Positions 2,890 to 64,000 of a stretch of 64,000 bases of DNA are shown here, one piece after another. The stretch comes from Salpingoeca rosetta. Taxonomy: Eukaryota; Protista; Choanoflagellata. The notes beneath the pieces are model-generated. The model did not search any database. It saw nothing but the letters and a program-made list of their open reading frames with translations, and was not told the DNA's origin. The DNA is taken from contig JAWQFM010000004.1 of NCBI GenBank assembly GCA_033442325.1, positions 882,264 through 946,263 on the forward strand, given 5' to 3'. A program made the position numbers and the translations under genes. The first letter of the stretch is position 1. Each line of letters starts with the position of its first letter.

Positions 2890-5800
2890 CCGATCGAGCC
2901 GAGGATTGGCCACTGTCGTCGTCGTCATCGTCATCATCCGCGTCATCATCATCTGTGTTGATGTTCAAAGCTTGTGCTTCAGCCCTGCATCGCAATAATC
3001 ACGACACGCAGTGAGGAGACGAAGCAGTCAGTGAAGCATTGGCGACGAGAAACGAGGAGGAACGGAACCAAAAAAAAAAAAAAAAAAAGAAAGTGGTGAA
3101 TTGAGCACGGCTGCACGACGCTTGAACCGTACCTTCGAACATACAACACCTCTACTTCCGCAGCTCGTGTTGATGGCGGTGATGCTGCTGAAGAAGACGA
3201 AGACGAAGAAGATGCAGGGGCTCCTCTGTCTTGGGTTGCGCTTCCGGACGCGCTGGCCTCAAACACGAGCACGGCCCTCACCCGGGAGGAGACCCCGTTG
3301 GCGACGACAATCTCCGCGACGGGCGGTTTCGACGCAATGCGCCACAGCCGGTGCGAGGCAAACGGCCCGGCTTTCCGAAAGTCACCGGAGCTGAAGTCCA
3401 CCACGGCCACGTGGGCGTCGTGGCCAATCTTCAGCGGTTGTCCTTTGCATTTGCCATTCAGCACAGGGTACGGGTTCCCGTACACAACGTCGCATGCCAG
3501 GACCACGCGATACGATGCGTTTGGGTTCAGGTTCAACACACTGAGATCATTGGGCACATTGTGACCGCGGCATACCTCGGTGAACGCCAAGGCGTATTCA
3601 ATGTCCGGCGTGAAGTAGATGCCTGCACCGTACCACCCATCATCTGTGCTCTTGAGCTGGACAAAATCACCAGCCAAAATGCCGACAACGGCCTCGAATG
3701 ACATGACGCCGTGAAACACGCGCTGCAACCGCACGGGTGGATCCTGGTCGAGCAAGCCTGGATCCAGTACGTTGTAGTAGGTGTTGGCTGTCACGCGTGC
3801 AAGCACTGCCCGCTCCTCTTCGTCGATGGCCCGGCCATTTTGGTGCACATCATGTAGATATCGCGGCGCAAACTTGTGCCGTGGGTCCGTGAGGTTTCCA
3901 CGATACCGGCCCCTCGTTGCCTCAATTGTGTTCATGAATGCGCTGAGAGATTGCGGGTTCCACGTAATTGCGACTGCCGCCAGTTGCTTGAGCACATCAC
4001 TAGCCGCTGCAACGTGCCCGCCAGCCTCAGCAACCAGCTGTGTGTGTGTGTGTGTGTGTGTGTGTGTGTGTGTGTGTGTGTGTGTGTGTGTGTGTGTGTG
4101 TGTGTATGTATGTATGTTGTGTGTGTATATATATATATATATATGTGTGTGTGCATGTACGTATGTGTGTTATGTGGTGTGTGTTGTGTTGTGTGTGCAT
4201 GTACGTATGTGTGTTGTGTGTGTATGAGTTGCATGCGATAATTGCGAGCACAATGAGTACAGGGGCGGCACGATGGGTCTACAAGTGTACATGTGAGCGT
4301 CCCTCGCGAAAAGGCAGTTGGGAACAAGATGGCAAGACAATACACCCGGTCAGCTGCACGGTCAGCAGCTGCACGGGACACACACGTGCGTGACAAGGGG
4401 CTTACGTCGTTGATGATGCTCGCATGCCTATGAATGTTGAGAGGAGCAATGTGGGTCCACCGACGTTTTGAGAGTTGGTGCGTGTTGGGCGCCAGTTCGG
4501 CGAGCAGATGCGGCGAGAAGTTCCATCGGCCATGGTCAAGCGATTCCTCGTTGTCCTTGAGCGAATCTACGACATCACGAATGTGCTGTGCCATTGACGT
4601 CACCGCCGTTGTGCCCTGCCCGCTGGCCTGCGCCGAACATCGCCAAGCGCCCTCAATGTCAAACAGCGACAGCACCACTTCCCGCACGGTCTTGTGCCGC
4701 TGTGGTCGTGGCAGGCGCAGCACCTGCGTGAAATACTGGTCCAGGGCTGCTGCCGTCTTCTTGCTCACGACATCCGGCAGCGTCGTCGCCAGCCGCTTCA
4801 TGCTGTCAAACGAATCATACTCGTTTGCCTCAGCCCTGCTCGTGCTGCTGCTGACTTCCACATCGTGCCACGCGCTGTCCACAATCACAGGAGCAACGCG
4901 CTGGAGACGAATGAGGTGGTGGTTGGCAAACTTGAACTCGCGCATGGCCAGCATCGCCATCCACTCCAGCAGCACGTTGTCGCAGTAGTCGCTGTGCTGC
5001 AGCTGCCTCATCTGCGCGATGGTGGCAGCAGAGACGATTGGGCAGGCCACCAGGCTCAGCCCAATCGCCGTCATGAACGCGTGCTTGAAGTTGACGCCCG
5101 TCTCCAGGTTGTTGGCGTCCAGAAATGCAACCAGGTTGCGCTGCTCCAAGCGCGGGTGCAGTGCCATCACCAGCCCACTGCTGGCGCGTTGCCTGGGGGG
5201 GGGAGCGGGAGGGGATGTTGGTGGGTTGTTGGGGGGGGGGAATGGGTGAGATGAGGGAGGAAGCTGCATGCAGTTGTCGTGGCTAGTGGGTGGAAGTGAC
5301 ATGCACATACTTGCACACACACACACACACGCACACAGACACACACACACGCACACAGACAGACAGACAGATAGACAGACAGACCCACGCAGTTACACAC
5401 GCACACACACACACACACACGCACACACACACGCACACTCATACACGCACACACTCATACACGCACACATACACACACGCACACGCACACACGCACACAC
5501 AGACACACACACACGCATACAAGTCTCACCGGTAGCTGATGAAGACGTCGTACTTGTCCTGCAGACCGAGAACGGGTATGAGAGGGCCGTATTTTTTGAC
5601 CAGGTCATCAGGTGACAGGAGCTGTTCGTCCACCCACATGCCCTGCTTGCTCTTGTGATGGTGCAGCACGTCCTCAAAGAACAGCAGCGTCTTGTCGTCG
5701 TACGGCAGCAGCAGGCTGCTCTTCAGCTCAGGATAGCGCTCTCTGGCAGCCTCGCTGATCACCTTGTGCAGCATGTGCACCGTCTGCAACATAGCGCGTG

Positions 5801-62900: not shown

Positions 62901-64000
62901 TGTGGGTGCACGAACAGCTCCTGTCACCCGATGACCTGATCACCAAGTATGACCCTCTCCTGCCCGTTCTCGGCCTGCAGGACAAGTACGACGTCTTCAT
63001 CAGCTACAGGTACGCTCTGCGGTTTGTTGTGCTGACACTGCAAATGTTTTGCAGCACCTTGACGCAAATGATGCGTCCGCTTCCTCGTTCAGACTTACCC
63101 TTCCTCAATGCTTGAACACTCCTTCAGGCTCGAAGAGGTCTTCGCTCTCTTGTCAGCAATCGCCAACTTGCAAGGCGCACAGAATCGGCTCAAAGTGCGC
63201 GCAGATGCGTGCGACATACTTCCGACGCCATTGCTGCGACGCACGACCCTGAACGCGTTGGCCCAAAGCACCGTCGTTTGTCCCGTCATATCTGTCTCAT
63301 CGATCGAACAGATTGTGAAGGACTGTCATGACGGCAAACCGAGTGAGCTCCTGCTCGAGTGGACAGCTATTCTTAGTATGAAGGATCTCGTCCGCGGCGA
63401 CGACAGCGCAGCTGCGCAGAAGCTACGCCTGCGAACCGTCATTCCAATTATCGTGGCAGCCCCATCTCACCGGAGCGATGATGCCGCCGTGCCAGCCTCA
63501 CATGAAATCGTGGTTGTGATGCAGCGGGCCGCAGCGCAGTTGCCGGACACTTCTCATGACCCAACAATGACCACGCTTACTTCGGAATGGAATGTGGGCG
63601 TTCAGCTGCCATCGAACCTGCCGACACCGCACGTGGTCGTTACAGAGTTGATGGGGAGGGCCGAGGCTGCCGCTGTACCGGTGCTTCAGTCACAACATGA
63701 CGACTTCGCCACCAACATCGAACGATACCTTCTCATTATCATGGACTCTGTACAGGAGCACGGACAATCTGTACACACACGACCAGAAAGTGCAAAGCAA
63801 CTGCGACAAAAGGCAAAACAATTGTTCAACCAAACTTACCGACTGCTATGGGGCTTGTCACGGAAGGATCGCGTATTTCTGGCTCAGGAGTGCGACATTG
63901 ATGCACCCGTGGACATGACGATTCAGGACCTCATTCGTGGCCTCACAGACACAGTACCTGAAGATGACCCGCTTGGCCTGCCTTTCTTCCATGCGGACAG
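59955..64000 (+). CDS. Second ROCO protein without LRRs: short N-terminus - Roc - COR - divergent TIR - unknown C-terminus (runs off the window)
   Basis: VGGGHSGKTT; FDLGGQ; COR exon 61489-63009 very similar to 5530-7110. After DVFISYR, an exon from ~63129 is open to the window end and contains VVCPVIS...SELLLEW...LRTVIPII. The 5' exons are tentative. Confidence 0.8.

Follow-up and report, generated by a model that had tools for sequence, protein, structure and literature searches.

A Roc-COR-TIR-PARP-like gene beside a PARP14-like macrodomain gene in a duplication-rich stretch of the Salpingoeca rosetta genome

DarT/DarG is a bacterial two-gene operon that acts on DNA and consists of an ADP-ribosyltransferase (ART) toxin and a macrodomain antidote. 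Macro-ThsA Thoeris systems exist as well, and Thoeris macrodomains bind the TIR product, ADP-ribose (ADPR)/imidazole adenine dinucleotide (IAD) (PMC11204291). In animals, macrodomain 1 of PARP14 is an ADP-ribosylhydrolase (PMC10499325, PMC10470015), and local duplication of PARP14-like genes is already known, including copies with a dead or missing ART (PMC4245714, PMC13224862). Here, we analyzed a 64,000-nucleotide stretch of the genome of the choanoflagellate Salpingoeca rosetta (contig JAWQFM010000004.1; the window hereafter), in which PTSG_11903, a gene encoding a protein with leucine-rich repeats (LRRs) and Roc, COR, TIR, and PARP-like domains, lies directly downstream of a PARP14-like macrodomain gene, referred to below as the macro gene (Table 1). 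A sequence-only reading of the window, whose background on PARP14 and Thoeris agrees with this literature, had proposed an ADP-ribose-centred functional island. We found the gene pair to be real, and a functional link between its members to be unsupported. We favor, with moderate confidence, a duplication-rich stretch in which fast-evolving, lineage-specific families of immune type have come to adjoin one another through local birth-and-death duplication, and not as one biochemical system.

The PTSG_11903 protein (P0001) matched the Pfam families LRR_6, Roc (3.7e-17), COR-A (9.3e-17), and TIR_2 (1.6e-5; slightly below the cut-off). Its COR directly follows its Roc, and both Roc and COR-A exceed their Pfam cut-offs, which is the order that characterizes ROCO proteins. 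The LRR-Roc-COR core is shared with LRRK2 and Dictyostelium Roco, whereas the output of PTSG_11903 is a TIR plus a PARP-fold domain in place of the kinase, and that of the second ROCO protein of the window, P0120, is a TIR plus a PNP_UDP_1 domain. Annotation was taken from scaffold GL832960.1 of assembly GCA_000188695.1 (window coordinate = record coordinate - 481812). The ROCO-TIR-ART gene of the sequence-only reading, on the minus strand, is borne out in its layout but not in its extent, with its end mapped to 1893 and not to 2890. A literature search for PTSG_11903 returned no mention of it, and nothing related turned up in the literature joining choanoflagellate, ROCO, and TIR.

PTSG_11903 is transcribed and spliced. 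Reads were placed on positions 2800-8700, and RNA contigs from run X4, which is RNA, show introns at 7809-7924, 8353-8456, and 8537-8660. A single error-free RNA contig joins the TIR exon (4406-4977) to the PARP-like exon (3132-4028), with the next splice at 3132/2984. This junction is in frame (...IIND/LVAEAGG...): the TIR exon ends with the codon GAC at 4406, followed by GTAAGC with its GT at 4405-4404, and the PARP-like exon begins at 4037 after a CA-repeat and an AG at 4039-4038. First mates map to the plus strand; for most types of stranded RNA library this indicates a minus-strand transcript. Most of the raw RNA reads that cover the COR exon are 95-99% alike and derive from paralogues, so that read depth there is uninformative for PTSG_11903. 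Joints from 2915-2944 to 7630-7655 also appeared in the reads, and many of these were rejected as artefacts; Asp-codon repeats occur at both sites. The introns at 8353-8456 and 8537-8660 are small, have GT..AG ends, and separate short LRR exons, a pattern that fits one repeat per exon across the region 8458-9924.

The TIR assignment comes from profile and model comparisons. Pfam TIR_2 scores 25.8 bits on P0001 vs a 28-bit cut-off, and a profile of 17 family members matches the enzymatic TIRs of flax L6/L7, SARM1, Roq1, and AbTIR at ~1e-7. An AlphaFold2 (AF2) model (pLDDT 72) has the TIR domains of Roq1, RUN1, and SARM1 as its best Foldseek matches, and the domain is of the TIR (flavodoxin-like) fold. 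The position of the catalytic glutamate in the canonical W-x3-E is occupied by Val in all 17 aligned members, and three residues further on, at position 5 of the predicted helix alpha-C, stands a near-invariant Glu. Because the canonical Glu is replaced by Val and only the shifted Glu is conserved, NADase activity of this TIR is unproven. The surrounding motif, D-[WY]-C-D-N-V-L-L-E-W, is common to the whole Roc-COR-TIR family, metagenomic relatives included. The available text of a 2026 preprint describes a cyclic ADP-ribose (cADPR)-producing TIR domain from S. rosetta, and that text leaves the tested protein unnamed (10.64898/2026.04.20.719644). The legend of its Figure 3, which covers several species, has Roc and COR among its domain abbreviations, implying that some of the TIR proteins tested from other species carry Roc/COR in the manner of PTSG_11903 (10.64898/2026.04.20.719644).

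The C-terminal exon required more sensitive comparisons. On its own it had no match in Pfam (E <= 0.01) or among PDB sequences; its close paralogues score 18-20 bits vs the 26.7-bit gathering cut-off of PF00644, and the window exon gives no match to that profile. An exhaustive HMMER search with the exon found 98 relatives, and 38 of the 51 distant ones match PF00644 PARP, the best at 8e-14. The family profile matches the catalytic domains of ZAP/PARP13 (5.9e-6), PARP15, PARP10, PARP12, and PARP14. The 50 Foldseek matches listed for an AF2 model of the domain (pLDDT 85.9, pTM 0.83) each fall on a PARP catalytic domain (E ~1e-6), and the motifs of the NAD+ site are retained in the alignment: His (QRVFHG; FHG), Tyr (GxGxYFTPD; GIYF here), and Glu (AEIVV). 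The exon at 3133-4037 is a divergent PARP-fold domain of the His-Tyr-Glu type, with putative transferase activity.

Among the HMMER relatives and in a search of the Roc-COR family, PTSG_11903 was the only case found of a PARP-like domain on a ROCO protein. The nine close relatives that were scanned are S. rosetta LRR- or ankyrin-kinase proteins with the PARP-like domain at their C terminus, and the closest match of the window exon belongs to this kinase-linked family (57% identity). This relationship suggests exon shuffling into the ROCO gene and not descent from an ART lost by the macro gene. The LRR kinase of the window was considered as another carrier, as its paralogues are, and was rejected, since the window has only two PARP-like stretches, one being the exon of PTSG_11903 and the other lying in a degraded copy of the macro gene (PTSG_11904, see below). 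Two distant relatives of the exon contain a SidE phosphodiesterase domain.

Upstream, the macro gene contains a large open exon (13655-19147, minus strand, 1830 aa) that holds its macrodomain. The best relatives of this domain in the PDB are macrodomain 1 of PARP14 (3vfq) and macrodomain 1 of PARP9, and its loop NSANPDLMNDGGVAFAISQAAG aligns to NASNEDLKHYGGLAAALSKAAG of PARP14. The domain has the features of a macrodomain, with NPDLMNDGGV as the first loop and GAFR as the second, the latter with the final Gly of G-[VIA]-[YF]-G substituted. In a word search, the nearest relative of the macro gene beyond S. rosetta was vertebrate PARP14. No PARP-like sequence was found in or after the macro gene, and a WWE domain, named as WWE-like in the sequence-only reading, received no support from Pfam, a PDB sequence search, or Atlas; the PDB and Atlas checks were uninformative for WWE and for the C-terminal RRMs alike. 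The RRM part of that reading holds in weakened form: RRM-like exons are present at both ends of the gene, at an RRM_1 E of ~0.01. The C-terminal ones match RRM_1 (0.011) and PHM7_cyt (1.2e-4), both below cut-off. At this 3' end, a unit of ~700 bp, made of an RRM-like exon and a CA-rich intron, occurs as 97% identical tandem copies (12083-13586).

A full PARP14 combines macro, WWE, and a C-terminal ART, and with the last absent and WWE undetected, the macro gene is a PARP14-like derivative and not a full PARP14 member. As in animal PARP14 and the PARP9-DTX3L-PARP14(-PARP15) locus, RRM-like modules stand ahead of a macrodomain of the PARP14 MD1/PARP9 MD1 type. Unlike animal PARP14, the intact copy in S. 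rosetta carries a single macrodomain, no ART, and no detectable WWE/KH. The neighborhood also differs from the animal locus, in that the adjoining gene encodes a ROCO-TIR-PARP-like protein and not a Deltex ligase, and there is no shared bidirectional promoter. The macro gene is most likely what is left of a PARP14-like gene after loss of its transferase, with weak RRM-like modules and a PARP14-MD1/viral Mac1-type macrodomain still in place; the macrodomain would most likely bind or remove mono-ADP-ribose. PTSG_11903, for its part, most likely works as a self-contained switch-type receptor, in which the LRRs would sense a ligand, the Roc-COR GTPase would switch, and the TIR and the PARP-fold domain with its His-Tyr-Glu would in turn use up NAD+ or attach ADP-ribose to targets. 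Enzyme activities and an immune role are inferences throughout.

About 2.1 kb separate the annotated 3' end of the macro gene (12014) from the start codon of the ROCO gene downstream of it (9924); both genes are on one strand, in sequence free of gaps. Annotation, Pfam, and the PARP search all agree with the sequence-only reading that a ROCO-TIR-ART gene follows directly on a same-strand macro gene without an ART of its own. This arrangement raises an alternative, namely, a functional writer/eraser pair, in which the ADP-ribose marks or ADP-ribose-derived products that the ROCO-TIR-PARP-like protein makes would be read or reversed by its ART-less macro neighbor. Comparable arrangements would be a PARP14 split in two, the PARP9/DTX3L/PARP14 locus, and the DarT/DarG toxin and antidote. 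As in DarT/DarG, a transferase gene adjoins a macrodomain gene possibly able to reverse its mark; in contrast to DarT/DarG, the S. rosetta genes form no operon and the ART is of the PARP-like His-Tyr-Glu clade, and the likeness is one of genes and not of toxicity. The adjacency itself and the absence of a PARP domain from the macro gene, while its twin and a third copy retain one, are what such a pair would lead us to expect. The same is true of the macrodomain, whose type, that of PARP14-MD1/PARP9-MD1, is hydrolase-competent (PMC10499325, PMC10470015) and whose N-x6-GGV loop is intact, and of the His-Tyr-Glu retained in the PARP-like domain. Human PARP9-DTX3L-PARP14 are, in addition, co-expressed from one locus (PMC13224862).

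A comparison with Thoeris can be drawn in the same way. As in TM-macro ThsA systems, the genes for a TIR enzyme and for a macrodomain protein adjoin each other. Thoeris has its ThsB TIR and its ThsA, of the SIR2-SLOG or the TM-macro kind, in one bacterial operon, whereas the S. rosetta pair consists of two eukaryotic multi-exon genes with separate transcripts, and its macro protein is PARP14-like and has no transmembrane effector part. The likeness seen is one of domain folds, and the pairing did not recur at the loci examined in this genome.

Both genes of the pair were detected in the RNA-type runs X4-X6, which also fits a writer/eraser pair: the fractions of sampled words found for the macro exon and the ROCO gene, respectively, were 0.54 and 0.62 in X4, 0.57 and 0.58 in X5, and 0.42 and 0.53 in X6. 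The two genes are therefore transcribed in the same cultures, which is not evidence of co-regulation, and they share no promoter, since they are arranged in tandem and not divergently. This tandem order, the resemblance of the PARP-like exon to the kinase-linked family with the exon shuffling that it suggests, and the failure of the pairing to recur at any other locus examined (see below) speak against a functional pair. We regard it as rather unlikely, and functional coupling of any such kind as, roughly, improbable to the same degree or somewhat more so. An extended form is more doubtful still: PARP14 writer/eraser logic would be split over two neighboring genes, with a GTPase-switched TIR and PARP-like receptor on one side and an ART-less macro protein reversing or reading its marks on the other, in the manner of a toxin and antidote or a signal and its terminator, and the pair would stand at the origin of ADP-ribose immunity in animals.

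Much of the window consists of copies of itself. Self-BLAST aligned 14196-19907 with 33799-37645 (inverted, up to 94% identical), 5528-7265 with 61324-63011 (84-89%; the COR exon common to both ROCO genes), and 29753-31787 with 39761-41828 (78%), in addition to the tandem unit at 12083-13586 (97%) and a pair around assembly gap 2 (88%). The first of these alignments reveals a degraded twin of the macro gene, PTSG_11904, in which several internal segments are deleted and the macrodomain is truncated and without its ADP-ribose-binding loop. The PARP domain of the twin is frame-broken, with the parts containing the His motif and the Tyr motif overlapping in different frames near 38090-38110, and an annotated "intron" spans this break and deletes the His motif. 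The PARP pseudogene of the sequence-only reading is accordingly present. A biotin-carboxylase/CPSase ATP-grasp fragment (33466-33741, plus strand) forms the annotated N terminus of PTSG_11904, and the same fragment heads a third PARP14-like copy, PTSG_02793, 540 kb away; the twin and PTSG_02793 therefore come from a common duplicated block. The block, i.e., a propeller gene on the minus strand, the ATP-grasp fragment with the PARP14-like gene on the plus strand, and another propeller gene on the minus strand, is repeated at that distant site, beside retrotransposon genes. Partial local duplicates, including those with a dead or missing ART, are likewise a feature of the animal PARP14 locus (PMC4245714, PMC13224862).

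The "RNA sensors," or RRM paralogs, of the sequence-only reading turned out by tblastn to be copies of the macro gene's own weak RRM-like 5' exons. Fragments of ATP-grasp, P-type ATPase, and tyrosinase genes, relics left in the window, were likewise counted toward duplication. Since the cluster arose to a large extent by self-duplication, the evidence that its members provide is not independent.

We then considered whether the pairing is found elsewhere. S. rosetta has at least 26 other Roc-COR(-TIR) paralogues, on 20 other scaffolds, and at the five ROCO-TIR paralogue loci that were sampled (10 kb on each side) none of the 27 neighboring genes was Macro or PARP. These neighbors are ordinary genes, such as those for Vps39, a DEAD helicase, a SNARE, a mitochondrial carrier, Ric8, and others. 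No macro neighbor was found at the closest PARP-like paralogue, an LRR-kinase-PARP-like gene, and no ROCO gene was found within 10 kb of PTSG_02793. A defence island would be expected to show its families recurring as neighbors more often than by chance, and in this small sample of five loci and the third copy they did not. For related choanoflagellates, the data are transcriptomes only. Co-clustering of ROCO-TIR and Macro/PARP genes, for which the sequence-only reading had suggested a genome-wide test, was not seen at the sampled loci, and the absence of recurrence at the sampled ROCO and PARP14-like loci marks the adjacency as a single event.

The ordinary neighbors of the ROCO-TIR paralogues also bear on a nonimmune alternative, in which ordinary signaling or RNA/stress-granule regulation would be the work of the ROCO-TIR family and of the PARP14-like gene, with their adjacency a by-product of duplication. 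The location of the paralogues among housekeeping genes, the Val in place of the canonical W-x3-E Glu in every aligned member, and the work of clade-3 PARPs in stress granules as well (PMC4245714) are all compatible with such a role. A large family with exon-level shuffling and high similarity among paralogues, together with sensor LRRs combined with NAD-consuming effector folds, fits evolution of the immune type. Also against such a role stands the S. rosetta TIR domain that is described as producing cADPR in the available preprint text (10.64898/2026.04.20.719644). We consider a nonimmune role unlikely.

Four observations weigh against local birth-and-death duplication as the whole explanation. 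The PARP14-like copy without an ART is exactly the one that has a same-strand transferase gene adjoining it. The a priori chance that a given gene would have an immediate ROCO-TIR neighbor is, by a rough estimate, ~0.5% (2 x 30 / 11,600 genes), and because of this rough prior the adjacency is not trivial. The macro gene and PTSG_11903 occur in the same RNA-type runs, X4-X6. Finally, recurrence was sampled at 5 of the at least 26 other paralogue loci, each over +/-10 kb. We nevertheless still favor the duplication reading. The adjacency is a post hoc pick from many possible domain pairings in a TIR-rich genome, and adjacency is all that stood behind the earlier claim that the macro protein reads or restrains the products of its neighbor, a pairing without recurrence at the sampled loci. 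The ADP-ribose-centred island itself comes down to this one adjacency in a duplication hot spot, in which most of the other parts are local duplicates or relics.

Table 1. Positions of the genes, domains, and assembly gaps of the window
Feature	Coordinates	Strand	Evidence or remark
PTSG_11903 (P0001, 1728 aa): LRR - Roc - COR - TIR - PARP-like - acidic tail	1893..9924	-	Mapped annotation, Pfam, spliced RNA contigs
Roc exons (7793-8494, 7323-7895) and Roc-end/COR exon (5529-7319)	5529..8494	-	Pfam Roc, COR-A
Main TIR exon; first strand KYDVFISYR closes the preceding COR exon at ~5529-5555	4406..5230	-	Pfam TIR_2, profile, fold
PARP-like (ART) exon, His-Tyr-Glu triad retained	3133..4037	-	Profile, fold, and alignment
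PARP14-like macro gene without PARP domain; isoforms of 2108 aa (P0132) and 2791 aa	12014..~22481	-	Annotation gives the 12014 end
Macrodomain, intact N-x6-GGV loop	14936..15307	-	PF01661 1.5e-22; alignments to 3vfq and lizard PARP14
Two C-terminal RRM-like exons (12287-12583, 12994-13290) in 97% identical tandem duplication	12287..13290	-	Self-BLAST, tblastn
Annotated 647-aa gene with a paralogue of the macro RRM-like exon (25029-25412) and an internal repeat	23219..25825	-	tblastn, annotation
Annotated 554-aa gene, inverted partial copy of macro 5' exons	26532..28877	+	tblastn 26853-27071, 27853-28263
Assembly gap 1	28950-29049		Intergenic
Secreted propeller-repeat protein, copy 1 (DUF5074/DUF6923)	29758..31017	-	Pfam, self-BLAST, annotation
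PTSG_11904 (P0133), degraded macro-gene twin	32593..38936	+	Self-BLAST, annotation, Pfam
Secreted propeller-repeat protein, copy 2 (DNA 78% identical to copy 1)	39765..41063	-	Self-BLAST, annotation
LRR - transmembrane - protein kinase receptor, 1132 aa	48209..52299	-	Domain scans, annotation
Tyrosinase CuB-half fragment, third His pair QQ	53846..54163	+	PF00264 4.2e-5; adjoins gap 2
Assembly gap 2	54973-55072		Within tyrosinase-like model; 88% identical direct copies on both flanks
Assembly gap 3	55893-55992		Intergenic
Secreted propeller-repeat protein, copy 3	56210..57450	-	Paralogue of copies 1 and 2
Second ROCO P0120, 1593 aa: Roc-COR-TIR-PNP_UDP_1	60678..64000, on to ~66604 past the window end	+	Pfam, self-BLAST

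The window has a base composition of ~56% G+C, with CA microsatellites abundant in introns, and an Rfam scan of it returned no RNA family. Its three assembly gaps spare both ROCO genes, the macro gene, its twin, and the kinase, and the core pair (1893-22481) is gap-free; the order of the twin, the kinase, and the second ROCO gene relative to the core pair depends on scaffolding across the gaps. The second ROCO-TIR gene, the LRR-transmembrane-kinase gene, and three secreted propeller paralogues were all recovered by Pfam, annotation, and self-BLAST; the sequence-only reading had listed a second ROCO-TIR, an LRR kinase, and secreted propeller proteins. P0120 carries a nucleoside-phosphorylase-type PNP_UDP_1 domain (PF01048, 5.3e-6, aa 1270-1492) and is a second case of a TIR combined with another nucleotide-directed effector fold.

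The tyrosinase of that reading is half there: its CuB half came from Pfam (PF00264), with the third His pair changed to QQ, while simple tyrosinase motif scans of the window found nothing. The tyrosinase-like gene model is unreliable because gap 2 lies inside it, between 88% identical copies, and the flanks of this gap (54205-55811) may represent a collapsed or mis-joined tandem repeat of the assembly. Decayed P-type ATPase motifs (GEMDEAMITG..., MLTGDKEGTA..., VAMVGDGID...) lie in different frames at 44346-45975 on the plus strand, where the annotated genes have no Pfam match, and probably mark a pseudogene. The annotated product of 57626-59429 (plus strand, 399 aa) combines a signal/anchor with a coiled coil and a Gly-rich tail; at the N terminus it is laid out much as the propeller genes are, and it gave no informative family match.

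The solid result is a transcribed LRR-Roc-COR-TIR-PARP-like gene, a second gene of the Roc-COR-TIR-PNP type, and a PARP14-like family amid birth-and-death evolution, and the two ROCO genes, Roc-COR-TIR-PARP-like and Roc-COR-TIR-PNP_UDP_1, are notable architectures in their own right. Should the pair prove to be functionally coupled, S. rosetta would offer an early eukaryotic example of writer and eraser genes lying next to each other. The combination of a Roc-COR switch and two NAD+-consuming effector folds in one receptor, with a PARP14-like macro gene as its neighbor, bears on the origin of animal ADP-ribose and TIR immunity, a question that is testable here because S. rosetta is amenable to culture and laboratory study.

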